A DNA stretch of 64,000 bases from Chlorokybus atmophyticus (Eukaryota > Plantae > Mesostigma and Chlorokybus algae). This document shows, piece by piece, positions 22,402 through 57,741 of this stretch. The number at the start of each line of letters is the position of its first letter. Positions within the stretch are counted from its first letter, which is position 1. The stretch covers positions 705,479-769,478 of the forward strand of contig RHPI01000385.1 of the NCBI GenBank assembly GCA_009103225.1, read 5' to 3'. Both the position numbers and the translations under genes were made by a program. The notes under the pieces are model-generated. The model was not told where the DNA came from. It did no database searches and worked only from the letters and a program-made list of their open reading frames with translations.

Positions 22402-26873
<4,472 letters not shown>

Positions 26874-28427: not shown

Positions 28428-29381
28428 CTACTGCCAATAGGCAAGTGGTTGAACAACATTACGTAAAACAGGCACTTCATCCATCCTTTGCGCCCACATC
28501 ACCGCGATGGTGGCATTACTCCTCGCACTCGGCACCCTCACTACAACATTGCTGACGCCCGCGTTGGGGTTTTCTTGCGGCCGGCCGATGAGGGAAGGGT
28601 CGGTGGAGAAGGTGGTGAAGAAGGCGTCGGGGGGAGACAGGATGAGGCCTTGAAGTTGAGAATCACCCTGTGATAGAGAAAGAGTGTTAGTAGTGATGCT
28701 GTGAGTAGGACACTGTACTGAGTGTGCGGGTGGGTGGGGGTAGGGGTGGGGGTGGGAGTGTGCTTGCCTGTGTGAGGGTGACTGATGCGCCACCCAGCGC
28801 AATATCCACCGAGGCGCGTGTGTGGAACATGCTCACCATGTCTACCGGATACAGGAACAACACCTGCCAATCACCACGCATCACCACCCACAACACCACC
28901 TATCAACATCAACTACCTCACCCACACCCACACCCACCCACCCACCCACAACATATCCCCTCCCCTCTCTTACCTCATCCTGCACGAGTAGCCTCGCCCT
29001 CGGCGCTCGCACGTCCTTGAGTAGCGCGAGTCCGCGCATCACGCTTACAGCCCCGCCGTACGCTTGCGTGAGGTTGACGACGGTGTGGGAGCGTAGCGGT
29101 GAGGAGAAGGGTGAAGTTAGTGACGCTGTTACGCCCAAGGCCTGGTTGGAGCAGAGAAGCTCGCTCTGAGTGGAGGGGGAGATGGCGAGAGTGTTATGGG
29201 ACTCGGTGCGGGTGCGGTAGTAGCTGTGAAAGGAGAGGGGGAGAGAGTGAGACCACGCAAGTATGTGTGCATGTGTGTACGTGTGTTTGTGGCTGTGTCA
29301 CACGCAGTCACAGACAGAGACAATGTGTGTGACGCACATACACACATGACTGTGTGTGACACGCACACGCGCACGCGCACG

Positions 29382-29467
<86 letters not shown>

Positions 29468-31323
29468 NTGTACTTGGCGGCGAAGAACCCCGGCAGATTA
29501 TAGTCATCATACCCCAGATCCACGAACCACCTCTGTCCATCATTATCAAACACGAACGATCCCAAGTCCAAATGCGCATGATTAACCTCTTTAGGTGCAG
29601 GGTTCCACCCTCCCTTGACCGCAAGATACCCTGCTTTGGGTTCGCCCCAACTCGCACGCATGAAGACTGTGTCCACCTCCCACCCGACGTGTCTCACGTC
29701 CAGCGGGAGCGGGTTGGGTTGGGGTGATTGAGTGAATACAGTTGGGTCTGTCCAGAAGAGGCGGAAGAAGAGGCCAGTGAGCTTGAGGTTGAACTCGAAG
29801 GCGGGCACGAAGGCGTCGGACACGGCGGAGGCGGCGTAGTAAGATAGTTGCATGGAGTTGACGACGTCGCCGCCGTCGGCGAAAGCGAAGGAAGAGCCGG
29901 TGGGACTGATGCATTGGATGCGGAAGTAAGCCGCAGCCTGTGCGTGGAACACAACACTGGTAAGATGACTGCGGCATAGAGCTTGTATAGAGGGTAAAGA
30001 GCTTCAAGCCAAACCCAACACACACACGTACATGCAATTGCGTGACCGTGACCCTTGCACACACCCACACCCACTCACCATCAGTGCGGGTGCTGTGCTC
30101 CACCCATAATCGTTCCCGAACCCCGTCTTCATGGCACTCAGCGCGAACGGCAGGTTGTACCCGATGTAGCTGGCGTAGAAGGGTCCTTCATAAAATGCCC
30201 CGCTGGGACTCAGATTGCGGATGGTAAGCTCGATGCCTGGCAGCGACATTGATAAAATCTGCTGGCACATTGTCATATCATTCTCGGCGAAGACAATGGC
30301 AGCGACAATGAAGCCAGTCAGGGAGTTGACGTTGACGTTGGTGTCCTGGACAAGAGTTAAGAGTTACACATGGAACAACAATGAGGTTGTGAGGTTGTTT
30401 ATACATGCACGTACCAGTGATGCAAGGACCGGTAGCATGTTTGCGTTGAGTGCTGGCATGAATGCGTTGTTGAGCACGGCGTTCCAGGCGGTGCTGCGCT
30501 GGTCGTCCGTCATGTCGTTGTAGAGCCAGTCGTAGCCCCACGAAGCAGCGAGCAGGTAGTTGTTGATGTCCAGGTAGCTCTCGACCTTGGTGAAGGCATC
30601 ACCCCTGAATGAAGTAGATCAGAAGTCAATTGGAAGTCGAAACACTGCACTGGCAGTTGTCTCGTGCATTTGTGCTCACATGCATGCACACGCACACATA
30701 TGCACACGCATGGATGTGTGTCACTGTGGCTGAGCTTACCAGGCGGGTAGGGATGATATGTACATGAGGTCGTTGAGTGCGTAGCTGAGCTTGGCGGGGT
30801 CGGAGTCGACGAGGTAGCCGCCAGCGACGCTGGCCATGCGGTCGGCAAAGTAGCGGGGAGAGTAGCTGCAAACAAGCAGTTTGATTAAGCAATGTTTACG
30901 CGAATGTGTGCACCAACAAACACAAGTAGTTGTGTGTACCTGACTGAGGTGGAGCGCTGGAAGGCGATTGTGCTGTTGGTGGCCATCATCGCGCTCTTGG
31001 CAATGGGCCACAACTTGTTCTTCACCTTATTCTGAGCACGAACAGCTGCGCGGCAGCACAAGACACACCCTTTGAGCAACCCACTCACAACCAACACCAC
31101 CACAACTACAACAGCAACAACAGTCACATTGCTCACTTGGGAAGTTGTCTGGTGTGACCACTGCGCGCGGGTGTCCCGGCCTGAGAGTGGCCAGCGCATT
31201 GCTGTAGTCGTTCACTGTATCTGTCGGCTGCGCCGATGCCAGCTGGATGGTCATAGCCATCATCATGATGAGAGCAAACTTGAGCTGCACTCTGGCCTGA
31301 GTCATGCTTTCAGCCATCAGCAT
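28428..31323 (-). CDS. Secreted heparinase II/III-like polysaccharide lyase/epimerase-fold protein, paralog 1
   Basis: Signal-like LKFALIMMMAMTIQLASAQ; motifs LRPGHPRAVVT, ESYLDINNYLLAASWGYDWLY, GAFYEGPFYASY, FAFADGGD, NHAHLDLGSFVFDNDGQRWFVDLGYDDY, YYRTRTESHNTL; ends VQPLAYWQ*. One junction near 29468 is hidden by an N and a microsatellite. Confidence 0.8.
29384..29467 (+). repeat. (GA)n microsatellite in an intron of paralog 1
   Basis: Pure GA run ending at an N (29468). Confidence 0.9.
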
Positions 31324-33878
31324 CTTGCTCGCTGCCGTGTGCACACACTGCAACAAGGACAATGCTGATGTAAGTCCAGAAGCTTTTTGCGACGTAACAC
31401 AAAAGGATACTACAGCATAGGAAAGCAGCATGTGTATAGCATGCATATCATAAGCATTGCAGCACAGTACCTGCTTGCAAGAAGAGGATGAGAGGAGAGG
31501 AGAGGAGAGGAGAGTTGAGGCTGACGTCAGTTGGAGCTTGATTCTCAATCTCACTGAGATGCAGTAAGCACTCTCTACTACTACTTGCTTCAAGCCTAGC
31601 ACTGGCTAAGCCCTTCCACTTAGCTGCCACTACTAGGCTGAGCCCACCGATGGTGAGTTCTTGGATGCATGTCACAGGCCTCCTGCTGCTTGCTATATAC
31701 TTTGTCATCGGGTGTTGAAGTGGCGTCAAGCGGGGCATCAGCACCAGCGCCCCAATGATGATTGAGGGAGGAAGCGAGCCTATGCAGAGCTGTGCGTGTG
31801 TGTCAGTGTATGTCTGTGTGTGCGGCACAGTGTGTGTGTATGCGAGTGTGTGCGTGTATACACTAACTCTCTCGCCTAACCTAACTGCCACAGACCCCCT
31901 ACAATCAAATTCCTCTTCAGTAAGCTCAGAGAATGTCCTAACTGCCCAAGCGGCGGCGAGCATAGCAGAGGCCGCCGCCACCACCGCCGCTGCCGCCGCC
32001 GCTGCCTGCTCTTCATCATTATCATCACTCCTCCTCATGCCATCATGCACAAGCTCTCGTGTGTGCGTTGTTGGAAAAAGTCAGTGCGCCAATCAATAGA
32101 TGCCTCGGGCTCCTGTGTATGTGATTATAAAACACTAGCTGTACGGTCACTTGCAATCGATTCTGGACACAACAAGTTGCTGCTGCCTCTGATCGTCAGA
32201 TGCAATCAGCGCGCCGCAGTCGGTACCATTGCAGGGTATCTGTGCTAGCATTGTCAGCCGCGGCTTCTCCTCTGCTTTCGTTACATCCAGCCACCGTTTC
32301 TGCAACAGAGTTCCCACACGTACGGAATGACCAGATTTTCCGAGCGTGCAATACCCTTAAAGTCACTACCAACGCCATGTTGAATGAGCCATAGCTCGCG
32401 TTGCCGTACAGCATGCCCTACTGAGAACTGTAATAGAGCCATGCGCTAGTCCCAGAACAGCCAGAATATCCGTAGAGTCGCTCGGTGCCTTTGTCAAGAA
32501 CATCATATGCCGTACAGGTAGACAGCTGCCCCTACTGTAGAGTAGGTGCGCGATGCGGTAGTTTAGGGCCTAGAATAATGCCGCGGCGCTAGCCGCCACA
32601 GCCTGAAGCATGTCAGGTTCTTGGTCGCACGGGCCGCCGCTATGCGCCGCGTCCCTAGAAGGGGGAAAGCCCCGTGTCCGAATAGGTACGCGCATCTGGT
32701 AGGGTCCTACCACATCGCGCGATCACGTAACAGAATTTGGTACCAGACAGCAGACTCCGCACCACCATACTTTGCTTTGTCGCAGACTTTCGTAGCAGCC
32801 AGCGCGTTGCAGCGCCCATACGGCGCCACGTCAGCAGTGGGCCGCGTTGGCACCAAACCACGATCATTATCGCGCGCGCCACTACCACACTATGCGGCAC
32901 GTACGGCCGCTTTTTGCGACAGACAGACACACAAGTGGACGTCTTCGAGGACCGTACAGAATCTGTCACCGGGTCCTCAAGCTGCCCCGGAGAACTGCCG
33001 TGCCGCGCTGGTGGTTGGGGGACAAAACACAGGCCGTTGTCGCTTTTTGCAAGCCCCAAACACTCGCCCCAACACAGACATGCACACGCTCTCTCCTCCT
33101 TGTGAGGGCCAAACAAAGTTTGGCCAAGTTTGCCTGTGCATGGGTTATCCCCGGAGCAAGTGGAGGGAGCACAACGGGCATGGTAGAGGAATATGGTTTA
33201 GTTTGGTTGCAGTTGCTTGTAAGCCATGATGATTTCTTCTCTGAAGCAATCATTCTCCACTGCGCCCCTGCTGGCGCAGCTGTATGAGGGGGTTGTCCAT
33301 GTGGCCAGTTCCATCATCGCTGTCGCTTCGGCCGATGAAGTACCGCTTGAGACTTGTAGTGAGACAGACTTACGTAACTTTGCCTTCTGGTCTGGTCTTG
33401 CTGCTTTGGGGCTGTAACTGCCTTGTCGGAAGTGCGTCACCCTCCCACTTCGGCAGCAGAGTAGAGTCAGTTGCTGCTGTCGAAGTCAGATCAACGCCGA
33501 GTCACGTGGTGACAAAAACGTCCCAACTGCTGCCGCACCTTCCTAGAGGAAGCGGCCTGTGGTGTAGTACAAATGGAGCAGCTGCTGCCTGTACAGATGA
33601 CATGCAAGCTCAAGGTCAGCAGTTGCAGCAGCCGCTTCCTGAGTTGCATCCAACCGCAAGCAGCTGCTTCCAAGCCTATCTAGCCTGCCTCCTTCAGCAG
33701 CTCGGTACGCCTTCTGCTTCTCAGTAAGCAGGCAGTTCTCTCGCCTCTGCCAAGTGCAAGTACTGGTCTGTATGTGTGTGCTCCTGTAGTGTCACACCAT
33801 GCATGCATCTTGACAAACTCTGATGCTTCTGTGCACCATGCACTTACTTACTTGATGTGTGCTTGCAGCTCTTCTTCA

Positions 33879-36460
33879 ATGGCGAGCCAAAGTTGCTGCA
33901 GCACGCCCAGCAAGATGTGCTGGCACTTACTGGTGCTGCCTCTGCTGCTGCTGGCGGCTGCAAGCCAGCTGGCAGCAGCGCAGGCAACAGACTACTCGAC
34001 AGTGCTTTCAAGAGTGAGGCTGGACCACCCGCGCGCAATCGTCACACCAGAAATGCTACCTGGTAAGCAAGCATACTCAGCACTGTTCTGGTAGTGTATC
34101 AGTCAAGTACCCGCTGGTAACCACTATGCTTGTGCTTGTGCTTGTGCATGCGCGTGTGAGACTAAATATTGTCCTTGTGCTGCCACACAGCAATCCGCTC
34201 GTACAACAATGTCAAGAGCAAGATGTGGCTGCTCTGCAAGAGCACCATGACGACCACTAACGCCACTATCGCTACCCCTCGCTCTCCCACTACCAGGTGA
34301 GTCAAGTCTGTAGACGCGCGTCTAGCAAAGTTGCCGCACAACAACTAGTTGGCTGCTATCAACCGCCGTGACTGACCTCTCTTGTGCAGTTACAGCGCCC
34401 GCAACTTTGCGGACCGCATTGCAAGTGTTGCTGGCGGGTACCTCGTGGACTCAGACCCCGCCAAGTTCGCTTACGCGCTCGACGATCTGATGTTCGTCTC
34501 TTCACTCTCTGCTTGGTGAGTTTGCGCGAGCTAAGCTATGCACGCTAAGTGCATGCGTGTCCAAGCCAAGCGAGTGCATCACCAACAACAATTTTGCATG
34601 CGCAGGGGCTCAAGCTTCAACAAGGTTGAGAGCTACCTGGACATTAACAGCTACTTGCTGGCCGCTTCATGGGGCTACGACTGGATGTACAGCAACCTGA
34701 CAGATGCACAGCGCACAACCGTGTGGAATGCAGTGCTCAACAACGCCTTCCTTCCCGTACTCAATGCAACCATGCTGCCCACCCTTGCGGCCCTGGTGAG
34801 TGCTGATTGCTGCAATCTGCATGTGTACATGCTTTCTCTGCTCTAAGCAATGCTGACATAGTCTTGTTGTCCGTGTCCATGCAGGACACCAACGTAGCCG
34901 TCAACTCCCTCACAGGCTACGTTGTAGCAGCACTAGTGTTCGCAGAGCGCGACATGAACATGTGCCAGCAGATACTGGCCATGGCCCTGCCGGGCATCGA
35001 GCTTACGATCCGCAATCTCACCCCAAGCGGCGCCTTCTTTGAAGGCCCATTCTACGGCAGCTACAGCGGCTACAACCTGCCTTTCGCCCTCAGCACTCTC
35101 AAGACTGCTCTCAACTACGACTTTGGTTGGAGCTCCTCACCGGCGCTCATGGTAAGGACAAGAGCAGACTCTTAGCAAGGTTGGACGTGTGCTGACCATT
35201 TACAGTTGCTTATGAGTACATAATGGCACAGGCCGCTGCGTACTTCCGCATCCAATGCTTGAGCCCTACCACCAAAGCTACGTCGTTCACCTTTGCTGAC
35301 GGAGGTGACGTCCTCAACTCGATGCAACTGAACTACTACGCTGCGGCTCAAGTGAACGACTCCTTCATTCCCGCATACGAGTACAACCTCAAGGTCACGG
35401 GCATGTTTTTCCGCGTGTTCTGGACCAACCCCAATGTATTCACGGCAACAGTGCCACCCAACCCACTACCCGTGGATGTGCGCCATATGGGGCTCGAAGT
35501 CGACACCGCATTCATGCGCACAACATGGAACGACACCCTCGCCGCGTATGTTGCCGTGAAGGCTGGGTGGAATCCTGCCCCAAAGGAGAGCACACATGCG
35601 CATCTTGACTTGGGATCGTTCGTGTTTGACAACGACGGCCAGCGCTGGTTCATCGACCTCGGCTATGACAGCTACACCCTGCCTAACTACTTCACGCCCG
35701 GGTACAAGTTTCGCTACAGGTGAGATACTGCCACTTGCGGAGTAGCTGCCGAGTGTTGAGTCTGCTGCCATACTTACTGTGTACCCACCTTGCAGTTACT
35801 ATCGCACACGCACCGAGGCACACAACACGCTGGCGATGAGCAACGCGACGCAAAGCGCCCTGCTGTGTGCGAACCAGGCGCTGGGCGTGAACGCATCGCT
35901 GTCGGTGCCATACTCCACCTCGCAGCGCTCGCACACTATTGTCAATCTCACAGACGCATACAGCGGCGCCATCAGCGTGCGTCGCGGCATTGCACTCCTT
36001 AAAGATGTACCTGCCCCATACGCCCGACTCCTTGTGCAGGACGAGGTGAGCATCCACACAATATATATACGCAATGCAAACCAACACGTACAAGGGTGCA
36101 TGGCGCTGACTTGCCTTTACCTGCACACAGGTGTCGTTTGTAACTCCCATGGATGTCATAAGCATGTTCCACACGCGCGCTACAGTCTCCGTGTCGCTTA
36201 ACGGCACATCCGCCACCCTTACACAGGGGAGTTCGCAGCTGCAGGGGCAAATTCTAAGCCCCGCCAATGCATACTTCACCACCTTCTCCACAGACTCCAG
36301 CGCGATCGGCAGGCGGAACGAGGACCCCAACACGGGTGTCACCAACCTGGTTGTGCGCATGCCCAACCTTTGCACCAACGCAACCATTGCAGTGCTCTGG
36401 TCAAAGACCCTGGCGGATGCGCCCATGCCTGATGTGCAGCCGCTGTCCACGTGGCAGTAG
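33879..36460 (+). CDS. Secreted heparinase II/III-like protein, paralog 2 (8 coding exons)
   Basis: MASQSCC..LLVLPLLLLAAASQLAAAQ signal; motifs RLDHPRAIVT, YLDINSYLLAASWGYDWMY, GAFFEGPFYGSY, HAHLDLGSFVFDNDGQRWFIDLGY, YYRTRTEAHNTL; ends VQPLSTWQ*. Introns are in phase and at the same positions as in paralogs 1 and 3. Confidence 0.85.
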
Positions 36461-39497: not shown

Positions 39498-42374
39498 ATG
39501 CAGCAGCTGCTGTATGCTTCAGCAAGTTGCGGTACACCTGTAAGGTCCGCTTTCTTTGGGGTTGCGCCCGCCCAGCGGCCTGGGCGACGGTGCAAGCACA
39601 GCTGCTCGGAGCTTAGCGTGCGCAAGGCTGCGGTGAGGTGCTGTGCCCGGCTGTGCCCTGCATGCCATGAGAAACTTCCACTGGTGTTACTGACAAAAGT
39701 AACCACAATTCTTCTTGTGCACGTGCGTATGCTTAACCTTGCTCATTCTTGCGCCATGCTACGCTGAGCATGTTTGCAACCTTGTGTGGGTTGGTGCATA
39801 CCAGCATGCGGCGTGCACATCCTTGCCTGATGTGAGTTTGGGTAGCTCAAGATTACGCCAAGCAGTGTTGTTGGAGCAGTCTTGTTGGAGTGCCCACAGG
39901 AGATTTACATGCTCGGCTTGGTGCCGTGCAGGGCTGTGGCGCAAGCAGGTGGCAGCAGCATGAGGGTGGCTGTGCTGGGCGCTGGTGTCATCGGCGCCGC
40001 CACTGCTTACTTTTTGTCCGAGAAGGGCGCTGAGGTCATTGTAATAGAGAGGCACCAAGTTGCTTGTGCTGCGTCCGGAAAGGTGAGCTAGCTTGGCATA
40101 TCNNNNNNNNNNNNNNNNNNNNNNNNNNNNNNNNNNNNNNNNNNNNNNNNNNNNNNNNNNNNNNNNNNNNNNNNNNNNNNNNNNNNNNNNNNNNNNNNNG
40201 GTCAGTGTCGTCGGGGATGGCCCCCCCCCCCACCTACCTGCCCATATGATTGCCCTCGCCAATCACACGCACACATGCGGGCGTGCATGCACATGCGGGT
40301 ACACACGCGCACGTGCATGAGCACACAAATATACACACGCGCGCGGTCACGCATACAAACAGTGTCTAATCCTGTCACAATCTCGGTGTACAATAAATGG
40401 AGTCTCACACACGAATGCTGCCTGATATTTCAGGCAGGTGGTTTTCTGGCCAAGGATTGGTGCGACGGAAGTCCGGTGGGCCCACTTGCACGAGCAAGCT
40501 TTGATTTGCATGCTGAGGCAAGTATGCATTCCATATGTGGTATGATTGTGGTATAGGCTTCCGACCAGTCATTGACTTGTGTTGTGTATAGCAGCTGCCC
40601 CCACCCCCCGTTGCGCACAATTATGAACACAAAATATGTTGCGTGCCATGCAGCGTCATCTGTGAGTTTGCTTGCCTTGCCTCCGATGCTAATTGTTTTT
40701 GCCTCCGCAGCTTGCTGAGACGCTTGGGGAGGACTATGGCTACCGCAAAGTAACGACTTACAGTGTGGCAGTCGTAGAAGGAGCTCAAGCAAAAGGTACC
40801 CGCTGTGTGATGTACTGCGTTCATTTTTATTGTTGAGTTATGTTTGACTGCAAAGGTTGTTATAACACACTAGTGCTGCAAGGTCTCAGTATCTATCGCG
40901 CTTTTGCATAGCTCGTCGCTCAGTCCCTCAGTCATTGCAGTATGCAGGTAGGAGCAAATCAGCTGCACCCAGTTGGGTTGATGGTCCGGTACAGAAATCA
41001 AACACAATCGGGACTGAAACCAACACTGCGCAGGTAAGTTTCTCGCTTTGGCCGCAGTGATGATATTAGTGCACAGCTCGCAGTTATTGGCTTTGGGCCG
41101 TTGAATACTGTGGGCTCAGTGCGCACTGTGCATCAGGCGTATTGTTGCCATGAGTACAGTTGCATACATGCTTGTTAACCTTGAACCCATTGTTTAGGTT
41201 CATCCAGAGCTGTTTACTAAAGCCCTGATAAGGCGTGCTGAACAAAATGGTGCAACGGTACGCATAGGCGAGGTCAAGGAGTTGAGACTGGGGACGGGAA
41301 TCGAAGGGGCACAGAAGCTTACTGGCGTAGTGGTAGATGACGACATTATTGAAGTCGATGCCGCTGTTGTGGCCATGGGCCCTTGGTCGTCACGGCTGGT
41401 AAGTGATATCAAGCAAGCTTTGAAGGCTGAAGTGTTTGTTTGCGATGCACCTGCTTGGAGTGCGCCACGTGTCTACCTATGAGCGCATGACACATTGCAA
41501 ACAGCACAAGACTACACGAATGACCACTGAACACTCGTGCTTACCGCTTGGCTGTGGGCAGGTCTCAGATATTTGCCAGATAACTGGCCTCAAGGCTCAC
41601 AGCATAGTGCTAGCTCCTAAGGACTCGGGGTCCATCGGCTCGCACGCGCTATTCTTAGCGTACGGCACCAAGGAGGGGCAGGAGTTGGAGCCAGAAATAT
41701 ATCCGCGGCCCAACGGTCAGGTGTACGTGTGCGGCATGTCTGAGGAAGTGCCAGTGCCAGAAGACCCCGCCCAGGTAGTTGTGTATTCATGGAGCAACAT
41801 GCCAATGATAAATACAGCTTGTTAGGGCAAGTTGCAATGAATCTCAATGAATGCACACACATTTGACAGTGCTATCCTTGCAAGTTGATGACACTGCTTC
41901 AACAGGTTGCTGTGTGTGCATCACGGGCTACTGTACCGGCATGTATACTGACTAACTTGCAGGTGCTGCCAACCAAAGGCAAGTGCGAGAAGCTTCAGCA
42001 AATCGCAAGTGTTGTCTCCAGCGAGTTGGGCGTTGCTGAAGTGGAGCGGCAGCAGGCATGCTTCTTACCAATATCAGAGGATGGAGTTCCGCTCATCGGC
42101 GCTGTGCCTGGGTTGGAAGGCACGGCGATTAGCTTTTCTGAAACCTTACTGGCATGCAGGCCAGCCAAGGCAGAAGCTTGCCTCTGATATTGCGCTTACC
42201 TTCGCAGGGGTGTACGTTGGCACGGGGCATTCTTGTTGGGGCATCTTGAACGGTCCGGCAACAGGAAAGTCGTTGGCGGAGCTCATTGTGGATGGGAAGT
42301 CCTCTACTGTCAATCTCAAAGCGTTTGACCCGGCTCGCTTCACACGGCGGTTTGCAACACCGTTTGCACATTGA
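39498..42374 (+). CDS. FAD-dependent oxidoreductase, DAO family (yeast TDA3-like), with a possible plastid transit peptide
   Basis: Motifs MRVAVLGAGVIGAATAYFL (GxGxxG; ATG 39960), ACAASGK|AGGFLAKDWCDG, VVAMGPWS, EPEIYPRPNG, QACFLP..DGVPLIG, GTGHSCWGILNGPATG. An upstream in-phase exon MQQLLYASASCGTPVRSAFFGV.. from 39498 is tentative. Confidence 0.85.
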
Positions 42375-45097: not shown

Positions 45098-47662
45098 CCC
45101 TGTGTGCAGTTGTAATTACAACTGCACACAGGGATGCATGTAGGCTGAACACAGGCAGCCAAGTTGTGACCAACTGCGCTTGACGACTACTGCTTCCGAG
45201 GGTACACGAGGACATCGTGTGGGTACGAGACGGGAGTCGGAACCATCGACACAGCGGCGTGGGGTCGCGACCGGCGGGCTTCTTCGGGGAACGAGCCGCG
45301 CGGCCGGCGCGCCGTCGGCCTGGCTGACCGCGGCGGCGCAGGGCGGACCTCGCGCCGACGGGCCTTGCGCCGCAACTTTGCGCCGACCAACTGCAATTGA
45401 GTACATGTAAGTACACATATACCGCAGAGACCCGTACATTACAACCCAATTAATGTTGTTGGCTTGGGTGGTAATTGTATTACTGTATTACAGACCTTCT
45501 TGATAGTAACATCAATGCATTGGTTTTTACGGTCATCATAGCAAAAGGTTGAAATGAGAAATAATCAGCAAAAGTGAATATGGGTTGTAATGTACGCATC
45601 CCTACAATAAACGCACGAGAAGCAAAGCATAAGAATAGGCAAGGACTATCATAGGCATTGGCATAGCAAGCACGGCAAGCGACAACAATGCACAATGCCA
45701 AGGGCTGATGCAAGCTTGTAACAACTTAATGCGTGGACAATTAGACTTGCAAGCACCACCGACATATATAGTAGAGGCAAGCAGTGGCAGCGAAGCATGC
45801 AGCGACCAAAGCTTGCGTGATCCCCCACCTATCATACATAGGCTGACCAACGTGACAATCACACATGCCATAATGCATGTGCAATGCCGTTTCGCATTGC
45901 ATGTACATAGCAACATCAGTTTGTTTGGGGTTCGTAATTGGTTGTGTCTTAGTTGGAGTTGTTCTATGTGAAGTTTGCTCCAACTCTACCTTGGCTCCCA
46001 TTACAAATGAGTGCAACGTGAGGTGTGTTTGCTTACTTTGCATTGGGCCTCTCTCCGCTTAAATGGTTTATCTGCAACTTACTGATTTGACACTCAATTC
46101 CATCAAATTGACGGNNNNNNNNNNNNNNNNNNNNNNNNNNNNNNNNNNNNNNNNNNNNNNNNNNNNNNNNNNNNNNNNNNNNNNNNNNNNNNNNNNNNNN
46201 NNNNNNNNNNNNNNNNNNNNNNNNNNNNNNNNNNNNNNNNNNNNNNNNNNNNNNNNNNNNNNNNNNNNNNNNNNNNNNNNNNNNNNNNNNNNNNNNNNNN
46301 NNNNNNNNNNNNNNNNNNNNNNNNNNNNNNNNNNNNNNNNNNNNNNNNNNNNNNNNNNNNNNNNNNNNNNNNNNNNNNNNNNNNNNNNNNNNNNNNNNNN
46401 NNNNNNNNNNNNNNNNNNNNNNNNNNNNNNNNNNNNNNNNNNNNNNNNNNNNNNNNNNNNNNNNNNNNNNNNNNNNNNNNNNNNNNNNNNNNNNNNNNNN
46501 NNNNNNNNNNNNNNNNNNNNNNNNNNNNNNNNNNNNNNNNNNNNNNNNNNNNNNNNNNNNNNNNNNNNNNNNNNNNNNNNNNNNNNNNNNNNNNNNNNNN
46601 NNNNNNNNNNNNNNNNNNNNNNNNNNNNNNNNNNNNNNNNNNNNNNNNNNNNNNNNNNNNNNNNNNNNNNNNNNNNNNNNNNNNNNNNNNNNNNNNNNNN
46701 NNNNNNNNNNNNNNNNNNNNNNNNNNNNNNNNNNNNNNNNNNNNNNNNNNNNNNNNNNNNNNNNNNNNNNNNNNNNNNNNNNNNNNNNNNNNNNNNNNNN
46801 NNNNNNNNNNNNNNNNNNNNNNNNNNNNNNNNNNNNNNNNNNNNNNNNNNNNNNNNNNNNNNNNNNNNNNNNNNNNNNNNNNNNNNNNNNNNNNNNNNNN
46901 NNNNNNNNNNNNNNNNNNNNNNNNNNNNNNNNNNNNNNNNNNNNNNNNNNNNNNNNNNNNNNNNNNNNNNNNNNNNNNNNNNNNNNNNNNNNNNNNNNNN
47001 NNNNNNNNNNNNNNNNNNNNNNNNNNNNNNNNNNNNNNNNNNNNNNNNNNNNNNNNNNNNNNNNNNNNNNNNNNNNNNNNNNNNNNNNNNNNNNNNNNNN
47101 NACTTTGCTCTTTACGCGACTTCTGCTGTTGTTATTGCTATTGCTAACAAACTGTGGCTTGCGCCCTCCGCTATGTACGCACGGTGACTGTTGTCCATCA
47201 AAGTGCGTGTGGTTGGGATGCAGGTGTAGATGTGGGAAATTACGAACGCACTTAATGGCATATAACCAAACGTATATCCAAACTAGCTGTACCACCACCA
47301 TAGCCTGCAGAAGCTTCTAGGACCAGCACACTTGCGTACAGGTAAAGATTTTGTCCATAAAGAAAGCGCAAAACCGTTGTGCCCATTACATGCACAACAT
47401 TGGTACATCAATGTTCGCACAATCATCACGTGAATACCACGTGCTTGACCGCAGCAGGGACACAGTCGACAAGACTGGACAATGCCAACATGGACAACAT
47501 GTACTCAACTGCATTATGCCATGGTCATCCAAAATACATCACAGAGATTGACGTAATGTGTTGCAAACTGCACTGAATTCAATCACAATAAACTCTCATA
47601 TAGGACAGGCACAAAACTATACGGGTTCAGTGTAAATAGGCAACAGCAGCTATAATAGTTGG

Positions 47663-50600
47663 CTACACATTGGAGCGCTGGAAGGCTGTGTCCTGCTTCA
47701 ACTGTTGAAGTACAACAGACTCAACACGTTTCCTCAGTGCTGCAGTAGGCAGCTTCTCCACAACCTGTACGAAGGCGGCGTAGATTACAGTTCAACATCA
47801 TTCACGGACATAGCATGACCAGCCACTGAAACAGTGCCAATTTACCTCAGCACCAAAAGAAAACACCAAGGCAGAGCGAGCGGTCTCGGCATCAATGCCT
47901 CTTGACAAGAAGTAGAATACTTCCTCATCATCAAGGTCGCTGATGGCTGCTCCGTGTGTGCACTTCACATCATCTGCAATAATCTGGACACAGCAAGTGC
48001 ATGTTAGCAGATTTGCAAATCAAGTTAACTCAACAGCAGTTTGCTGGTCGCGTACCTGCAGGTTTGGTTTGACATTAACTGTTGCGCGTGGGGCCAACAG
48101 CAAATTTCTGCTCAGCTGTCCAGCATCAGTCTGCTGTGCATAGCGGTTGACCTTCACATTGCCATCAAACACTCCTCTGCCTGTCGAGTCTGTGACAATG
48201 CACTTGTGCAGCTGTCGGACTTGTCCTCGGGGATGGTCCAGCTTCACACTGCAAAGATGACACATGTCAAGCTCGCCACCTTGACATGTTTCACGAACAG
48301 CAACCATGTACTTACCTGGTATGCAAGTCGTGCAGCTGTCCGTGTGATGCCAGCAGGAAGCTGTGCAACTGTGTTTGCGTCTCAGGCCCTTGCTGGTCCA
48401 TACGCAAGTTATGTCTCGAAAGTTTGCCTCCAAGGCCTGCCTCTGTCATCTCATACGCGCTGCCCTCAGCTTGACTGACATAGGTAGCCTTGATATGGTA
48501 CGCCGCACTGCTTTGCTGCTGGACGTAACCGTGGACGACCTGAAATGGGCGCGTGTCAGGTAGACAATGCATTTGGACAACCTGGTCCTACCAGCACAAT
48601 AAGCCAAGGTTTCTTCAGACCATGGACAAAGCCATACTGCTATGCAGCAGATCAAGCTAAAATACCCGCGATTTCTTAGCAAGGACAAACTCAGCCACTG
48701 CAGATGTGGCGGAAGGCCCCTCGCCCGCAAACTCTTCAATGATAGTTACTTCCGCCTCTTCTTCAACAACTACCAGTAAGCGAGGGCTGCACAACTGCAC
48801 GCCTGCACAATTGCAGCATCAGTATGTGTGCCCCACACAACTTCAATCAAGATGCATTGATACTGGCGGAGAGAACCCAATCTCCTGCATACCATCCGCT
48901 GCTGACGTCGAGTAGTATACAACATGAATGGGCTGTTCAACTCGAACCCCAGCTGGTACATGCACCTAACATGAAAGTAGTTGTGATTAGCAACACTGTA
49001 GCTACAAAAGCAACCCACAGGCAACTGCTGACATACCATGGTGACATCCCTGGCTGTGGCTGTATTGACAACCGTAAACGGGTCCGCATCTATGGAGGAG
49101 GACAAACTGCCTGCACAAACAGATGGACCTATATTAGCACTGCTGTTTGCAATAGGTTATTGACAGCTATGTGAACTGGCACGAATTGCAACACAAAAGT
49201 GACCAATGTGACTGAGAGACATTCAGTTAGTTTCTCACCCAAGTACGGTCCTAGGATATTGCGCGACAACTCGTTGGGCTCTGTGGCAGCACTTGCAACA
49301 CTGACCCCAGCTGGAACCCCGGTGACATTGCTCTGCTCCCGAACAAAAACGCCATCGACGACAACCTGCCCAGGCAACACATATTGCCTCCAATAACATG
49401 CCGGGGGGTACATCAACAACAGCGGCTGTGACATGCCCAACCATGCAGTCATATATACCAGGCGTGTTGTGTCTGCCGCAGGAAGGGAGAATCGACTGAA
49501 GTCAATGGAAGAAGAACACGCAAGAGTGTCAGCTGCGGCTGGTGTGGGAAGCATTCTCTCAGAAAGCAGACCCGATACATCGGTGAAGCGATATGCCTCA
49601 TCTTTACTGCACAACAGAGCTGCAGTTGATGCAAGCTGACCAGATGGACTCATGATAACTATCTTATGTGCGGTGTCCACTAGCATTGATTGCACTGTTC
49701 AAAGCAATGGATCAGATTCAAGTTAGGACGTTCTCTGCATCAGCGTAAGCTGTCAGAAACACGGACCAATCACTTTGTCTCATCTTATCCATGATTGCCA
49801 TGACAGCAAAGTTAACGCTTCAGTCACACACAAACACAACGGCCAATAGATCAGCAAGCTGACTAATACCAGATGGACTCATGACAACTATCCTATGTGC
49901 GGTGTCCACTAGCATTGAGTGCACTGTTCAAAGCAATGGATCAGATTAAATTGAGGACGTTCTCTGCATCAGCGTAAGCTGTCAGAAACACGGACCAATC
50001 ACTTTGTCTCATCTTATCCATGGTTGAGATGACAGCAAAGTTGATGCTTCAGTCGCATACAAACACAACAGCCAATGGATCAGCAAGCTAACTTCGACTT
50101 CGTCTGCATCAGCTATCGCTGAATCAGAAACACGGACCAATCGAGTTGTCTCATCACCTCCAATGGCACTACGACAACCATGGCTCTCCTTGCTGGTATG
50201 CATGCATGCAAACCTGGTTGGCATTCGCACGCGCGACAGGGCTGCTTCGCCTGCTGTGCGCAGGGACGCCAACTCTGAACTCAACCCGCCTCCAGCCATT
50301 GTAGGCATGGCACGAATAACTGCTGCGACCCATTCTTCCGCCTGCAGAAGCAAGCATGGATACATTGGTGCACGGACGCAGCTTTTACGCAGCTGCCTGC
50401 TGCTTTAACAACCATTTCACCGCCATTCAGTTCTATACTCACACTGTAACCTATGTGCTTCCTTGGATGGTGCCACGCCGGCAGCTATGAAGGCAGGTGC
50501 ATGGAGTGGGCCATGACTAAGCATGCAGCGCAAAGAACGGTGCGCCATGAGCGAACTGTGCATGTAATCTAGTTCCATCAATGCGAAAATACCACCGGTA

Positions 50601-50984
50601 ATGTGATGAACAAGCATACAGGAACGCATGAAGTAATCCTAGCGGGCACACAGGCAGCAATTGACAACCATCACTGCGCTTGCCATAAGGCTGTAGCTCC
50701 AACGCTTGCTTACTTGCCTTTGACAGCGAGGCAGAGGGCGCATCAGCCTCACGAATGTCTGGAGCAGCTTCTGCAGCAGCCGCAGCAGCCGCCCTGACGC
50801 CTGCACGTCTGCTGCAGCGCCGGCCCTCAACACGCGCTGACCTCGCCGGCGGAAGGCCTGCCGCAGCCTGCACAGGTCGGCTCAGAGCGGTGGCTGCGGT
50901 GGGAACAGCAACTCCACGACGCCTACCAGCAGCAAGCGCAGGCACGCTCACGACAGCCACCTCACCCGTCACCGCCGCCGCCAT
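47663..50984 (-). CDS. SUFD: Plastid Fe-S cluster assembly protein SufD (ABCI7-like)
   Basis: Ala/Arg-rich transit peptide MAAAVTGEVAVVSVPALAAGRRRG..; motifs MPTS|KDEAYRFTDV, GGKLSRHNLR, LHKCIVTDSTGRGVFDGNVKVNRYAQQTDAGQLSRNLLL..KPNLQ|IIADDVKCTHGA..FYFLSRGI. Confidence 0.94.
49708..49791 (-). ncRNA. U18: C/D box snoRNA U18 (SNORD18), copy C, in SufD intron 2
   Basis: TGGA-taAGATGA (variant C box)...ATTGGTCCGTGTTT-CTGA (D')...CTGA-TCCA with a terminal stem. The guide is complementary to LSU rRNA GAAACACGGACCAA. Confidence 0.75.
49937..50020 (-). ncRNA. U18: C/D box snoRNA U18, copy B, in SufD intron 2
   Basis: Same architecture as copy C, 229 bp away. Variant C box AAGATGA; guide and D/D' boxes intact. 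Confidence 0.75.
50076..50162 (-). ncRNA. U18: C/D box snoRNA U18, copy A, in SufD intron 2
   Basis: TGGAG-GTGATGA (canonical C)...ATTGGTCCGTGTTT-CTGA (D')...TGATGC (C'-like)...CTGA-TCCA. The fifth nucleotide upstream of D' pairs with the A of AAAC[A]CGG, the known U18 target (yeast 25S Am649). Confidence 0.9.
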
Positions 50985-51275
50985 GCTCGCCGCAACATGC
51001 GCAATGCCCTGCCTGCCGACCTGTGCGACCGTCAAACCCTAAGCTGGACGGCTGCGATCGTGATGTAGCCAATGGCTCTCTCAACGCCGTTGAGGTTCGT
51101 GATAAGATGTTGCGGTGGCACAATCCGGATATCGACGACGACTGGATATCGATAGGTCCGTGCGAGGTACTACAGCCCAACATGCTGTTTGTGTGCATTG
51201 TTGTGTTTACGGCTCAGTGCAACCACATGGGTGAGTCTGTCCAGCTTGGCAGGGAAGTGGTCAGTGTCGTCGGGG

Positions 51276-54200: not shown

Positions 54201-54310
54201 CCATGTTGGAGTTGCAAGACACCATTGCTCGCTTGCGAGCAGCGGAAGCTGCTCTGTTGGATGGCAGAAGCTACCTCGCAGCAAGGTCAACTTTGAAGGA
54301 CATGTTTTGA
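51276..54310 (+). CDS. Lon protease substrate-binding (Lon-N) domain protein, probably plastid-targeted
   Basis: First exon MAAAVVTCGTSWQPQ..RGRRMHGRSGALLVHCQ (transit-like). Then LAIMPLSRPKFPAERVSLQLFESRYR|AMFKVV..FGIAY, VGTVCRL, VAVGRYRLRRIVSDKPFIT|AIVEDY, RFSFAIA..LPVAEQQ|AMLELQDTIARL..YLAARSTLKDMF*. Confidence 0.82.
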
Positions 54311-55229
54311 ATTGCACGAGGCACTCCATGCAACACGTGCTACCTCTGGTTCTGCTGCCAACCAGTGTTGATAAAAACAGTATACCTGCCCAGCTGTAAC
54401 TTCTGTCTTGCGCATGCACGGTCGCTTTCTCCTTGGCTGATCATGGGCTCGGCATAGATCGCCGTCAGGGCCTGTTCCACGAAAAATCTGGGTTTGTCAG
54501 CAAGCATTGAAGCCAGCAGGGCATGAGCGCAGTGGAGGCTATCCTGCTGCGCACTTCTAGCTAGGCCAGACTGGTGCAACAGCCAACCAGCGCTATAACA
54601 ACGTGATGGAGTATCAATTTGTGACCATCTGGTGCTTTCTGTGTGCGCTTGCCTAAAGAAGTCTTGCCTGAGACACCAATAACAAGTGTGAGTGTACTCG
54701 AGAAATAGCTGTGTGCCAGTGTGCTGTGCAAGGGTGCTACATGTGTTCATGTACTCTGTATTGCTGACAGGCACCTTGGCTGACCTTGGTTGTCGAGCAG
54801 AGAGGCACACTTGAGCCTGCACTGCATCTTGGTACCGTAATGGAGGCAGTGCAGCTGTCATATTAAGTTGCTTCACATTGTCCCAATGATAACTGACTGT
54901 CCGAGTCCGAGACTGCCGCGTTGCAACGTATTCAGCCATTGACACGTGCGCGCACGTGTGTGTAGCAGGACACGGTGCAGGAGACTGCAGTCGCAAGGAG
55001 CCATGGAAAGCGCATGCAGCGTCTTAAGGTAAAAAGCAAAGGCATGTTGCCATTTGCAGCAAGTACACGAACAGCAGGTAATACATTAACGAGTGCACAG
55101 AACGTGCACTCAAAGAATAATTGTCAATGGATAATTCTATGTACAAAGAATGGCTCAACCTAAACAATTGCTGCTTACCCCTACAATCAATAAATCGATG
55201 ACTACTTATACAAGCTAGCTTTAATTGAA

Positions 55230-57741
55230 CTACTGCCATGTGGACAGTGGCTGCACTTCAGGCATTGGCGCATCTGCCAGGCTTTTGGACCAGAGCACTG
55301 CAATAGTTGCGCTGGTGCACAGGTCGGGCATGCGCACAACCAGGTTGGTGACGCCCGTATTTGGGTTCTCCATTGGTCTGCCTATCACGAGGGGATCTGT
55401 AGAAAAGGTGGTGAAAGTCGCACCGGCGGGGCTTAGAATCCGCCCTTGCAGCTGCGAACCTCCTTGTGCAAGGGTGGCTGTTGTGCCAGCCCTTGACACG
55501 GCAACCGAAGCGCGCGTGTGGAACATGCTGACAACATCCATGGGAGCCACGAAGGATACCTGTGTACAGGTGGACACAAGTCAGCGCCATCCTTGTCCGT
55601 GTGGGTGTGCAAATGTTGTGCAAATGCCCACCTCGTCCTGCACAAGAAGTCGAGCGTATGGGGCAGGTACATCCTTGAGGAGTGCAATGCCGCGACGGAC
55701 GCTGATGGCGCCGGTGTATGCGTCTGTGAGATTGACAACAGTATGCGAGCGCTGTTCCGAGGAGAACGGTGTTGACAGTGAGGCAGTCACGCCCAGTGCC
55801 TGGTTCGCACATTGCAGAGCGCTCTGTGTCGTGTTGCTCACCGCCAGAGTGTTGTGAGATTCAGTGCGCGTGCGGTAATAACTGCAAGGTAAGTACATTG
55901 TAAGTATGGCAGCAGACACTTGACACTCTGCAGCTGCTCTGCAAGTGGCGGTCTCCCACCTGTAGCGAAACTTGTATCCAGGCGTGAAGTATCCAGGCAG
56001 GCTGTAGCTGTCATAGCCGAGGTCAATGAACCAGCGCTGGCCGTCGTTGTCAAACACAAATGATCCCAAGTCAAGATGCGCATGCGTGCTCTCCCTTGGA
56101 GCGGGGTTCCACCCAGCCTTCACGGCAACATACGCGGTGAGGTTGCTGCCCCATGTCGTGCGCATGAACGCAGTGTCAACTTCCAGCCCGCGGTGGCGCA
56201 CGTCCTCAGGTAGCGGATTGGGCAGAATTTGTTGCGTGAATGTGGCAGGGTTTGTCCAGAACACACGGAAGAACATGCCCGTGACCTTAAGGTTGAACTC
56301 ATACGAGGGCACAAAGGCGTCGTTCACTTGAGCTGCAGCATAGTAGTTCAGTTGCATTGAGTTGAGAACGTCGCCTCCGTCAGCAAAGGTGAAAGATGTT
56401 GACTTGGCGGTAGAGCTTAAGCATTGGATGCGAAAGTATGCAGCGGCCTGCACAATGTTATACTCATCAGCAAATGTGCAAGTTTGGGTACTCATACCAT
56501 TTTACTGCTCTTAGCCTTACCATCAGGGCCGGTGAGGAGCTCCAGCCAAAGTCGTTGTTGAGAGCAGTCTTTAGAGTGCTAAGGGCAAAAGGCAGGTTGT
56601 AGCCGATGTAGCTGCCATAGAAGGGGCCCTCGAAGAATGCACCGCTTGGGCTTAGGTTGCGCATCTGCCGCTCGATGCCTGGCAGCGCCATAGCCAATAT
56701 CTGCTGGCACATGACCATGTCGCGCTCCGCGAACACTATGGCCGCTACAACGTAGCCTGTGAGCGAGTTGGTGGCTACGTTTGTGTCCTGCATTGATGCG
56801 TTATGAGCATGTCAGCTTTGCTTTGCTCACTGATGCATGCGTGCAGGTTGCAATCAGCACTCACCAAGGCCGCGACGGTGGGCAGCATGGCCGCGTTGAG
56901 GGCGGGCAGGAAGGCGTTGTTGCGCACTGCAGTCCATACAGCCGTGCGCTGCGCGTTGGTTAAGCCGCTGTACAACCAGTCATAGCCCCATGACGCCGCC
57001 AGCAGGTAGTTGCTCAAATCTAGGTAGCTTTCAACCTTGTTGAAGCTTGTGCCCCTGCACATGCAAACCGCTCTGGTGGTGCACTTACACATGCATTGCA
57101 GGCATACAACTGCATGCATGGCTTGTAACTCACCAGGCAGGGAGCGAGGAGATGTACATGACATCAGCGAGCGCATATGCAAACTTGGCGGGGTCCGAGT
57201 CCACCAGGTACCCGCCAGCGATGCTTGCAATGCGGTCCGCAAAGTTACGGGCATTTGAACTGCACAAAGAAAGGTCAGTTCTGGTGTTGGTAGTCGCAAC
57301 CAGTACTTGTGCAGCAGCCTTGCTAATCCTTGTCAAGAGCTTGCTTGCCTGGCAAAAGGAGAGCGAGGGGTGACGATAGTGGCATTGGCGGTTATCATAG
57401 CGCTCTTGCAAAGTGGCCACATCTTGCTGTTGACGTTATTGTACGAGCGGATAGCTGCGGCGGGGACGGCACAACAGCATCAGTAAGTCAAGGTACAAAG
57501 AAATGAACACGTATTGCATGACTACATCACTACCATAACACTGCTTACTCGGCAACATGTCCTGCGTGACAATAGCGCGAGGGTGTTCGAGCCTCACGGT
57601 GGACAATGCTGTTGAGTAGTCTTGTATTGACTGCGCCATTGCAAATGGGACTGCCAGCGCCAACAGCAGCAACAGCTGAGGAACCTGCCATCGCCAATGC
57701 CTCCTATTTTGCAGCATACTGCAACAACTTTGGCTCGCCAT
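55230..57741 (-). CDS. Secreted heparinase II/III-like protein, paralog 3 (inverted duplicate of paralog 2)
   Basis: MASQSCC..QLLLLLALAVPFAMAQ signal; motifs RLEHPRAIVT, YLDLSNYLLAASWGYDWLY, GAFFEGPFYGSY, HAHLDLGSFVFDNDGQRWFIDLGY; ends VQPLSTWQ*. Exons and several introns align with paralog 2. Confidence 0.85.

Follow-up and report, generated by a model that had tools for sequence, protein, structure and literature searches.

Putative secreted PL35-type lyases, a family otherwise known from bacteria, in the nuclear genome of the streptophyte alga Chlorokybus atmophyticus

Three paralogous genes at the locus

Exactly three PL35-like paralogues, here called A, B and C, are present in the window (the whole 64-kb stretch of Chlorokybus atmophyticus DNA that was analysed), and a local tblastn of the window returned no fourth copy or fragment besides them. 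Three paralogues had been predicted, and all three were confirmed in place and strand, with the motifs EGPFY(G/A)SY, FADGGD, HAHLDLGSFVFDNDGQRWF(I/V)DLGY and HNTL common to them. The features of the locus are as follows.

28428..31323, minus strand: gene A, putatively secreted PL35-like lyase; 9 exons, ~647 aa, broken by N at 29468
Gene A exons 1-5, minus strand: 31323-31137, 31045-30940, 30865-30740, 30604-30415, 30345-30079
Gene A exons 6-9, minus strand: 29937-29469 (truncated by N), 29223-28974, 28863-28768, 28667-28428
28668..28767, minus strand: extra GC-AG intron of 100 nt, in gene A only (donor GCAAGC, acceptor ACAG)
29468: unread letter N inside gene A; on the coding strand a (TC)n microsatellite comes next
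33879..36460, plus strand: gene B, putatively secreted PL35-like lyase; 8 exons, 646 aa, intact frame
Gene B exons 1-4, plus strand: 33879-34062, 34191-34296, 34390-34515, 34606-34795
Gene B exons 5-8, plus strand: 34885-35151, 35232-35719, 35796-36045, 36131-36460
40103-40199: assembly gap between B and C, outside all three coding regions
46115-47101: assembly gap between B and C, outside all three coding regions
55230..57741, minus strand: gene C, putatively secreted PL35-like lyase; 8 exons, 649 aa, intact frame
Gene C exons 1-4, minus strand: 57741-57549, 57454-57349 (GC donor), 57259-57134, 57054-56865
Gene C exons 5-8, minus strand: 56787-56521, 56447-55960, 55881-55632, 55559-55230

Genes A and B lie head to head, with their start codons 2.5 kb apart. 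Since both assembly gaps fall between the end of B (36460) and the stop codon of C (55230), no reading frame crosses them, and the distance of C from A and B, as well as its relative orientation, depends on scaffolding. Seven introns are common to the three genes, at the same positions and in the same phases, and those of B are GT-AG throughout. The expectation of shared intron positions held for these seven, but not for the eighth, GC-AG intron of gene A, which interrupts sequence equivalent to the last exon of B and C. Reading through this intron meets a stop, and splicing it gives an alignment with B and C in which TLTQ is followed directly by GDSQLQG.

Similarly, the claim that the genes are full-length and free of stops and frameshifts stood for B and C but not for A. 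In B and C, exon 6 goes on as 'KFRYS' and is then followed by a GT donor; in A, the N stands where the final ~5 codons of that exon and the donor would be, and the frame is bridged with X only. The gene models give products of about 647-650 aa, longer than the ~600 aa of the original prediction. Read by eye, the N-termini look like signal peptides, as had been proposed, with a hydrophobic core and then AxA before Gln, and the products are presumably secreted.

Gene A corresponds to the JGI Chlat1 model jgi/Chlat1/9200/Chrsp97S09287 (hereafter P0001), which matches exons 1-6 and exon 7 and differs from the present reading only at the start Met, the N, the GC-AG intron and the C-terminus. In the protein collection searched there was no predicted protein for B or C, and no transcript-derived protein for A, B or C. 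The existing annotation apparently leaves B and C without a protein model, and that of gene A is wrong in three places.

Nuclear residence and selection

Three observations could suggest that the locus is artefactual, through contamination of the assembly with bacterial DNA or because the genes are decaying pseudogenes: their nearest relatives outside Chlorokybus are bacterial, an N interrupts gene A, and B and C are unannotated in the protein set searched. Such a reading is scarcely credible and is already contradicted by several lines of evidence. Each gene is split by 7-8 short spliceosomal introns (GT-AG or GC-AG) at common positions and phases. Eukaryotic genes flank A, B and C on the same sequence: exons of Vta1 and HSP90 lie upstream, and one of SufBD falls between B and C. 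The G+C content (0.50-0.56) resembles that of the flanks. The frames of B and C are intact, and dN/dS is 0.169 (B-C), 0.171 (A-B) and 0.132 (A-C) at dS of 0.65-1.9. A, B and C are thus nuclear genes of C. atmophyticus under purifying selection (dN/dS 0.13-0.17), and the domestication proposed earlier agrees with these introns, neighbours and ratios. No GH88 or sulphatase partner gene was seen among the neighbouring reading frames scanned.

Assignment to the PL35 family

The membership of A, B and C in the Hepar_II_III superfamily, suggested earlier from their motifs, is confirmed and can be narrowed to PL35. Pfam PF07940 (Hepar_II_III_C) matched exons 6-7 of gene C with 36.1 bits (gathering cut-off 24; E 6.5e-9), P0001 with 26.5 bits and the Chlorokybus paralogues with 30-54 bits. 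Of the two Pfam families put forward for this check, only PF07940 was detected; DUF4962 (PF16332) stayed below threshold in the window exons and in all eight Chlorokybus proteins. The combination of DUF4962 and Hepar_II_III_C is the architecture of most bacterial homologues retrieved. The N-terminal half of the Chlorokybus proteins aligns with the toroid of PL35 structures, and the missing DUF4962 match therefore points to divergence rather than to an absent domain. A search of the PDB with P0001 at E<=1e-3 gave PL35 entries only (8khv, 2.7e-30; 9o3q, 2.2e-20; 8khw, 2.7e-18); neither the other Hepar_II_III lyases nor human DS-epimerase 1 (6hzn) matched by sequence at this threshold. When exons 4, 5 and 6-7 of gene C were searched separately, the best solved match was PL35 each time.

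The structure modelled was that of P0001, the database model of gene A, which is without two internal stretches. The AlphaFold2 model (pLDDT 87.5, pTM 0.88) has helices at residues 37-354 and strands at residues 366-578, a predicted two-domain architecture of an (alpha/alpha) toroid and a beta-sandwich that would carry the Mn2+ site. Foldseek placed the model closest to 8khv (E 2.9e-28, TM 0.77/0.80), with the next best family at E 2.6e-18. VIA-align gave Z 34.0-34.7 for the three PL35 entries (34.7 for 8khv, with 513 residues aligned at an rmsd of 2.7 A), compared with about 26 for PL15 and PL17. In this fold check, which the original prediction had called for, PL35 was clearly the best match to the predicted structure.

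The closest solved relatives are the PL35 glycosaminoglycan lyases GAGase II from Spirosoma fluviale (8KHV), GAGase VII from Bacteroides intestinalis (8KHW) and the BcPL35 chondroitinase from Bacteroides caccae (9O3Q); the founding member of the family is from Victivallis vadensis. PL35 enzymes act on polysaccharides with uronic acids (HA, CS, HS or alginate), which they cleave by beta-elimination. The Chlorokybus proteins resemble these enzymes in size (~600-650 aa), in the predicted toroid and beta-sandwich (TM 0.73-0.80, Z 34-34.7) and in keeping the catalytic Asn/Tyr/His, the Glu of EG, the Arg76 of BcPL35 and four Mn2+ ligands. They differ in that their genes are eukaryotic, nuclear and intron-rich, with a eukaryotic-type signal peptide (by eye), in their identity of just 19-25% to the solved structures in structure-based alignments, in a 5-residue insertion before the 'YLD' motif, in the undetected DUF4962 and in two substrate-lining replacements described below. 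PL15 (Atu3025), PL17 (Alg17c), PL21 (heparinase II), PL12 (heparinase III), PL33 and PL39, the other lyases of the Hepar_II_III superfamily, have the same overall fold and use the same general His/Tyr beta-elimination chemistry (PMC12088678, table 4). However, these six families are more distant (Z 19-26; TM normalised by target 0.45-0.67; no sequence match at E<=1e-3) and consist of larger enzymes with extra domains.

Catalytic, metal-binding and substrate-lining residues

The residue roles in PL35 have been established by mutagenesis (PMC12088678, PMC12269599). In GAGase II these are the Asn neutraliser, the Tyr acid, His401 as base and the Mn2+ ligands (PMC12088678). The corresponding sites in A, B and C, numbered after GAGase II, are as follows.

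Asn codon in DTNV, aligning with Asn192: B 34891..34893 (plus), A 30339-30337 (minus), C 56781-56779 (minus)
EGPFY, with Glu242 and catalytic Tyr246: B 35041..35055 (plus), A 30189-30175 (minus), C 56631-56617 (minus)
HAHLD, with His401, His403 and Asp405: B 35595..35609 (plus), A 29580-29566 (minus), C 56084-56070 (minus)
HNTL, its His aligning with His457: B 35821-35832 (plus), A 29198-29187 (minus), C 55856-55845 (minus)

In addition, the Asp of WF(I/V)DLG aligns with Asp421, another Mn2+ ligand. In the alignment, no Chlorokybus paralogue departs from Asn192, Glu242, Tyr246, His401, His403, Asp405, Asp421 or His457, and the residues of the Asn/Tyr/His catalytic columns are shared by 92 or more of the 93 bacterial proteins. 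By alignment, A, B and C thus appear to retain the PL35 catalytic triplet and a putative Mn2+ site formed by His403, Asp405, Asp421 and His457. Retention of the catalytic Tyr and His had been foreseen, and both align with residues of GAGase II (Tyr246 and His401). It had also been pointed out that the Asn-His/Asn-Trp site reads TNV here; the neighbouring His/Asn and Trp have in fact disappeared, and TNV does contain the neutralising Asn (Asn192). All Chlorokybus paralogues have Asn in this column, as do 92 of the 93 bacterial homologues, the DTNV Asn aligns with the ETN of BcPL35, and the T-N pair at this position is likewise found in BcPL35.

Two substrate-lining positions are replaced throughout the algal clade. 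The His136 column holds Ser or Gly in Chlorokybus, where 87 of 93 bacterial sequences have His, and the column after the neutralising Asn holds Val or Ile, where 91 of 93 have Trp. With these residues replaced, the substrate is probably not a classical animal glycosaminoglycan, and the activity itself could be altered rather than merely retargeted.

Such a change in the surroundings of the active site, specific to the clade, would also suit a second proposal, in which A, B and C encode uronyl C5-epimerases instead of lyases and alter GlcA or GalA inside the algal polymer. In that case the same His/Tyr machinery would remove the C5 proton and return a proton from the opposite face, as in DS-epimerase 1. 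Human DS-epimerase 1 (6HZN), a eukaryotic protein of the secretory pathway, belongs to the Hepar_II_III superfamily as well and has the same fold; it is the best non-PL35 match of the P0001 model in VIA-align (Z 27.1, 529 residues aligned; Foldseek E 2.4e-16). However, it lies further away than the PL35 lyases by both fold measures (7 Z units, and at least 10 orders of magnitude in E-value), and it was not matched by sequence, either with the whole protein at E<=1e-3 or with the EGPFYGSY exon at E<=10; the likeness of YGSY to DS-epimerase drawn in the original prediction was therefore undetectable by sequence search. All residues shown by mutagenesis to be necessary for PL35 lyase activity are retained. 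The evidence leans to a lyase without settling the matter, and an epimerase function seems distinctly improbable.

The Chlorokybus family and its origin

A, B and C belong to a larger PL35-like family of at least 10 paralogues in Chlorokybus. In unrooted trees, ten Chlorokybus proteins form a single clade (support 100), within which A, B and C are the youngest branch with the topology (A,(B,C)). The other paralogues, P0002 and P0154 (Chrsp290), P0003, P0004, P0005, P0006 and P0007, resemble A, B and C in clade membership, in catalytic and metal residues and in the clade-specific substitutions, but are just 33-54% identical to the gene A protein. P0005 differs further by a fused Pollen_Ole_e_1 module (Pfam), and P0004 and P0006 by N-termini that are not signal-peptide-like. 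Compared with these, A, B and C represent the plain, secreted-looking and recently duplicated form.

The proteins adjoining the Chlorokybus clade have the DUF4962 plus Hepar_II_III_C architecture, and all those labelled with a taxon are bacterial, from many phyla. The sister in the tree is a protein of a Kofleriaceae MAG (SH-aLRT 83, on a long branch), and the nearest bacterial homologues are 28-31% identical. Among the best 120-150 matches listed, the eukaryote-labelled ones were from Chlorokybus only, and the other taxon-labelled matches checked were bacterial or from MAGs. A clade of ten beside bacterial sequences fits a single transfer followed by expansion, and the domesticated and expanded horizontal transfer of the original prediction is in keeping with these trees. 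The family would derive from one gene, most simply of bacterial origin, which would later have acquired introns as well as a signal peptide; other copies would have added eukaryotic modules.

The depth of the Chlorokybus clade, with paralogues just 33-54% identical, could instead reflect vertical inheritance, in which the family would be ancestral to eukaryotes or green plants and lost nearly everywhere else, with no horizontal transfer. No bacterial sister is well supported, and weaker eukaryotic relatives could be hidden beyond the best 120-150 matches. Vertical inheritance is nevertheless improbable, given the confinement of eukaryote-labelled matches to Chlorokybus among those listed and the position of the clade amid two-domain proteins whose labelled members span many bacterial phyla. 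Moreover, a review according to which Chlorokybus and Mesostigma lack pectin lyases makes no mention of this family (PMC10762512).

Proposed function and substrate

The reading that we prefer, at a probability of roughly 70%, is that A, B and C are nuclear genes for secreted PL35-type lyases of bacterial derivation, which likely act on the alga's own polymer. Secretion, lyase activity, substrate and biological role are all inferred here. As in GAGase II, neutralisation of the uronate carboxylate would fall to the Asn of DTNV and removal of the C5 proton to the first His of HAHLD, and the Tyr of EGPFY would protonate the leaving O4, so that beta-elimination would cut the chain and leave a 4,5-unsaturated uronate. 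A metal may be held by His, Asp, Asp and His (of HAHLD, the DLG Asp and the HNTL His). The most likely target would be the sulphated polymer with GlcA and GalA in the wall or mucilage of the alga itself, and cutting would occur in cell-packet growth, cell separation or zoospore release.

Beta-elimination requires a 4-O-substituted uronic acid. The 'pectin' of Chlorokybus is sulphated, has both GlcA and GalA and includes beta-D-GlcA-(1->4)-L-Gal, although the study that describes it does not establish 4-linkage of the GlcA or GalA (PMC10953000). The same polymer resisted every enzyme tested (PMC10953000). A more specific proposal is that the algal PL35-like clade has a novel lyase specificity, cleaving its own sulphated GlcA/GalA/L-Gal 'pseudo-pectin' as an endogenous system of wall and mucilage remodelling through altered -1/+1 subsites (Ser/Gly in place of His136, Val/Ile in place of Trp). 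This we advance tentatively, as possible but somewhat doubtful.

The enzymes might alternatively be aimed outward, digesting the acidic exopolysaccharides or capsules of bacteria in the mucilage, for defence or carbon, rather than the alga's own matrix. The proteins look secreted, and their nearest relatives, among the matches listed, come from polysaccharide-degrading soil and freshwater Verrucomicrobiota, Planctomycetota, Acidobacteriota and Myxococcota. Against this, the family numbers at least ten, with fusions to a plant-type Ole e 1 wall module among them, which is a better fit to work on the alga's own wall, and the alga itself produces an unusual uronic-acid polymer for which no cleaving enzyme is known. 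Neither point is decisive, but on balance an outward role is rather unlikely.

Chlorokybus is part of the streptophyte lineage that lies furthest from land plants. The alga's acidic wall polymer differs chemically from pectin, with no enzyme known to cut it (PMC10953000), and pectin lyases are stated to be absent from the alga (PMC10762512). In the literature searched, such enzymes were not described from any green or streptophyte alga, in line with the earlier statement that no characterised green-algal member was known. A family otherwise known from bacteria offers a probable case of a carbohydrate-active enzyme that became a resident, intron-bearing and duplicated plant-lineage gene, a history relevant to how the extracellular matrix was made and remodelled by early streptophytes on land surfaces. 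Its Chlorokybus members could plausibly serve the alga in remodelling its unusual acidic, sulphated slime. As an expanded, selected and secreted-looking PL35-type family, they are candidates for the missing activity that degrades or remodels the polymer, and the enzymes may also serve to dissect its structure.

Gene models

A six-frame scan recovered the motif set of the heparinase II/III-like enzymes three times in the window (minus strand at ~29.2-30.2 kb, plus strand at ~35.0-35.8 kb and minus strand at ~55.8-56.6 kb), in line with the three motif-bearing paralogues of the original prediction. A local tblastn search with the B protein as query found no fourth copy in the window beyond these, referred to here as genes A, B and C. 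Gene models were obtained by aligning the three regions at the DNA level and anchoring the splice sites.

Gene models and GC-AG introns
31323-28428, minus strand: gene A, nine exons, about 647 aa, with a break
33879-36460, plus strand: gene B, eight exons, 646 aa
57741-55230, minus strand: gene C, eight exons, 649 aa
Donor at 57348, minus strand: GC-AG intron 2 of gene C, donor sequence GCAAGC
Donor at 28767, minus strand: GC-AG intron 8 of gene A, donor sequence GCAAGC

The shared intron positions that had been claimed are borne out by seven positions, equal in phase, common to A, B and C. The short introns (69-245 nt) have GT donors, except for the GC at intron 2 of C and at the extra intron 8 of A. 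Identity is 82% between B and C and 67% between A and each of the other two. The start codons of A and B lie 2.5 kb from each other in a head-to-head arrangement (31323-33879), and the region between them may hold a shared bidirectional promoter.

Signal peptides had likewise been proposed, and all three N-termini read accordingly, each having a hydrophobic core and then AxA ahead of Gln (ASA|Q, AAA|Q and AMA|Q). The signal-like segment ends about ten residues ahead of a conserved 'L..LR.GHPR' motif, at which the aligned core common to algal and bacterial homologues begins. This arrangement points to secretion of the three proteins.

Both flagged gaps (40103-40199 and 46115-47101) fall within the 18.8 kb from the stop codon of B to that of C, the two genes being oriented tail to tail. 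Neither is crossed by the reading frame of A, B or C, and the linkage of C to A and B rests on scaffolding because both gaps fall between B and C. Of greater consequence is a single unflagged N at 29468, which stands where the final ~5 codons of gene A exon 6 and its donor would be. Directly beside it is a long microsatellite, which is probably the reason for the assembly break at this position:

29375-29467: (TC)n run, 3' of the N on the coding strand of gene A

Position 29468 was translated as X only, and gene A is not callable as complete from the present assembly.

When exons 6-7 of gene C were used as query in an exhaustive HMMER search, the seven best matches all came from the EukProt/JGI Chlorokybus atmophyticus Chlat1 proteins. 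The top match, P0001 (595 aa; Chrsp97S09287), represents gene A in the annotation, and its splice sites agree with the present model across exons 1-6 and exon 7. P0001 starts at a later Met. It also leaves out the region around the N, and where the GC-AG intron lies it uses another donor, so that 23 conserved residues are missing. Its C-terminus is altered as well, the conserved '...PL..W' end common to B, C and bacterial homologues having been spliced away. The public model is thus wrong in three places: at the N, at the GC-AG intron and at the C-terminus. No B- or C-like protein was found in the protein collection searched with gene C exons 6-7 and P0001, and both genes seem to be unannotated there. 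Among transcript-derived proteins, the same two queries gave no closer match than the Chrsp290 paralogues.

Family assignment and predicted fold

Single exons of gene C were used in the searches, with full length represented by P0001; the joined translations of A, B and C served locally for tblastn within the window, alignment, trees and dN/dS. The Pfam signatures expected for the family were found in part. Hepar_II_III_C (PF07940) was detected, DUF4962 (PF16332) was undetected on any full-length Chlorokybus protein, and single exons gave no Pfam match in the N-terminal half. When gene C exons 4, 5 and 6-7 were compared with solved structures, the best match of each was an entry of PL35, the lyase family of GAGase II (8KHV), GAGase VII (8KHW) and the BcPL35 chondroitinase (9O3Q). 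P0001 matched these three at E-values of 2.7e-30 (8KHV), 2.2e-20 (9O3Q) and 2.7e-18 (8KHW), and no structure outside PL35 reached E<=1e-3.

An AlphaFold2 model of P0001, with a 100-sequence alignment as input, had a pLDDT of 87.5 and a pTM of 0.88; it is helical in its N-terminal half and rich in beta structure in its C-terminal half. Foldseek placed the three PL35 structures on top (E 2.9e-28 to 2.8e-24, TM 0.73-0.80), followed by PL15, PL21, PL17, DS-epimerase 1 and PL33 at E 1e-18 to 1e-15. The VIA-align Z-scores gave the same order, with 34.0-34.7 for PL35, 27.1 for DS-epimerase 1 and about 26 for PL15 and PL17. The anticipated fold match was therefore obtained, with PL35 ahead of PL15, PL17, PL21 and DS-epimerase 1.

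Active site and substrate

Mutagenesis has identified Asn192, Tyr246 and His401 as key residues of GAGase II, in which Mn2+ is bound by His403, Asp405, Asp421 and His457 (PMC12088678). Key residues of BcPL35 include Arg76, Glu228, Tyr232 and His387 (PMC12269599). Alignment positions were corrected for a 22-residue offset between paper and chain numbering.

Algal motifs and aligned PL35 residues (GAGase II numbering unless BcPL35 is named)
Asn of DTNV: Asn192; BcPL35 counterpart ETN
EGPFY: Glu242 and Tyr246
H-A-H-L-D: His401, His403 and Asp405
Asp of WF(I/V)DLG: Asp421
His of HNTL: His457
Arg of S(P/A)R(Y/N)F: Arg76 of BcPL35

The catalytic Tyr of EGxxY and His of HxHxD, which the original prediction took to be retained, thus align with Tyr246 and His401. 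Across the 100-sequence alignment, every Chlorokybus paralogue that it contains keeps the key columns, as do nearly all of its 93 bacterial homologues. The algal clade departs from the bacteria throughout at two substrate-lining positions: in the His136 column, 87 of the 93 bacteria have His and the alga has Ser or Gly, and directly after the Asn, 91 of the 93 have Trp and the alga has Val or Ile. Since the catalytic columns are kept and two groove positions are replaced, the PL35 chemistry looks intact and the binding groove altered, as judged from the alignment. Sequence, predicted fold, catalytic triad and metal site all agree with PL35 in the comparisons that could be made here; two secondary features, the DUF4962 signature and the two groove residues, do not. 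A, B and C fit best into PL35 as divergent members encoded by a eukaryote.

By analogy, the residues conserved as in GAGase II imply that the putatively secreted enzymes would carry out Mn2+-dependent beta-elimination on a uronic-acid polymer. A lyase requires a 4-O-substituted uronic acid, and the alga's own matrix polymer could be cleaved only if its uronic acids are so substituted. The 'pectin' of Chlorokybus is sulphated, contains GlcA and GalA, includes beta-D-GlcA-(1->4)-L-Gal and was attacked by none of the hydrolases tried (PMC10953000). According to a review, Chlorokybus is without pectin lyases (PMC10762512). We infer that the alga's own matrix is the best candidate substrate; a bacterial exopolysaccharide as target is a real alternative. 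No GH88 or sulphatase partner genes were found among the longer ORFs scanned in the B-C interval and upstream of A.

Genomic setting and evolution

The values of dN/dS are 0.13-0.17, with a dS of 0.65 for B and C and of >1.4 for A against B and C. The three genes are old duplicates maintained by purifying selection. Base composition is even across the region, in which the following further features were recognized.

Other features of the region
14301-15107, plus strand: exon(s) with Vta1 C-terminal domain (E 4.1e-12)
24155-24895, plus strand: HSP90 exon(s) (Pfam E 2.6e-43)
41952-42371, plus strand: weak, sub-threshold FAD-oxidoreductase match, between B and C
48023-48445, minus strand: SufBD core domain exon (E 8.2e-16), between B and C

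HSP90 and Vta1 are ordinary eukaryotic housekeeping neighbours, and the SufBD exon probably belongs to a plastid Fe-S assembly factor. The locus is nuclear algal DNA; introns, eukaryotic neighbours and dN/dS led us to reject both a bacterial contaminant and pseudogenes.

The Chlorokybus family has at least 10 members: A, B and C, two on Chrsp290 and one each on Chrsp1, 52, 6, 194 and 2. The ten Chlorokybus proteins were placed in trees together with metagenomic matches and 75 proteins translated from the genomes of bacteria belonging to many phyla. In the phylogeny that had been suggested as a check, all ten form one clade with a support of 100, both by FastTree (127 rows) and by IQ-TREE under LG+C20 (68 rows), with A, B and C at its tip as (A,(B,C)). 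Nearest to the clade from outside is a long-branched protein of a Kofleriaceae MAG (SH-aLRT 83); this support is too weak for Kofleriaceae or Myxococcota to be proposed as donor, and none is named.

No eukaryotic proteins other than those of Chlorokybus were among the matches listed in three sequence and profile searches. A profile search with a Chlorokybus-only alignment listed only bacterial-type matches and missed some Chlorokybus paralogues themselves, so that its list says little about whether other eukaryotes lack the family. The family is likely absent from them. In the literature searched, we found no description of PL35-type enzymes from streptophyte algae, Chlorokybus included. PL35 has only been listed among the CAZyme families that some fungal genomes were found to contain.

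Three paralogues outside the window are of note. P0005 (Chrsp6, 1225 aa) carries a Pollen_Ole_e_1 domain (E 1.7e-6) ahead of the lyase domain and is a plant-type wall module fused to a bacterial-type enzyme. P0004 (Chrsp52) and P0006 (Chrsp194) are the two deepest Chlorokybus paralogues. The N-terminus of P0006 is Gly/His-rich, and the start of P0004, MGQAASS, could be an N-myristoylation motif. Since neither has an obvious signal peptide, part of the family may be active inside the cell or at the membrane.
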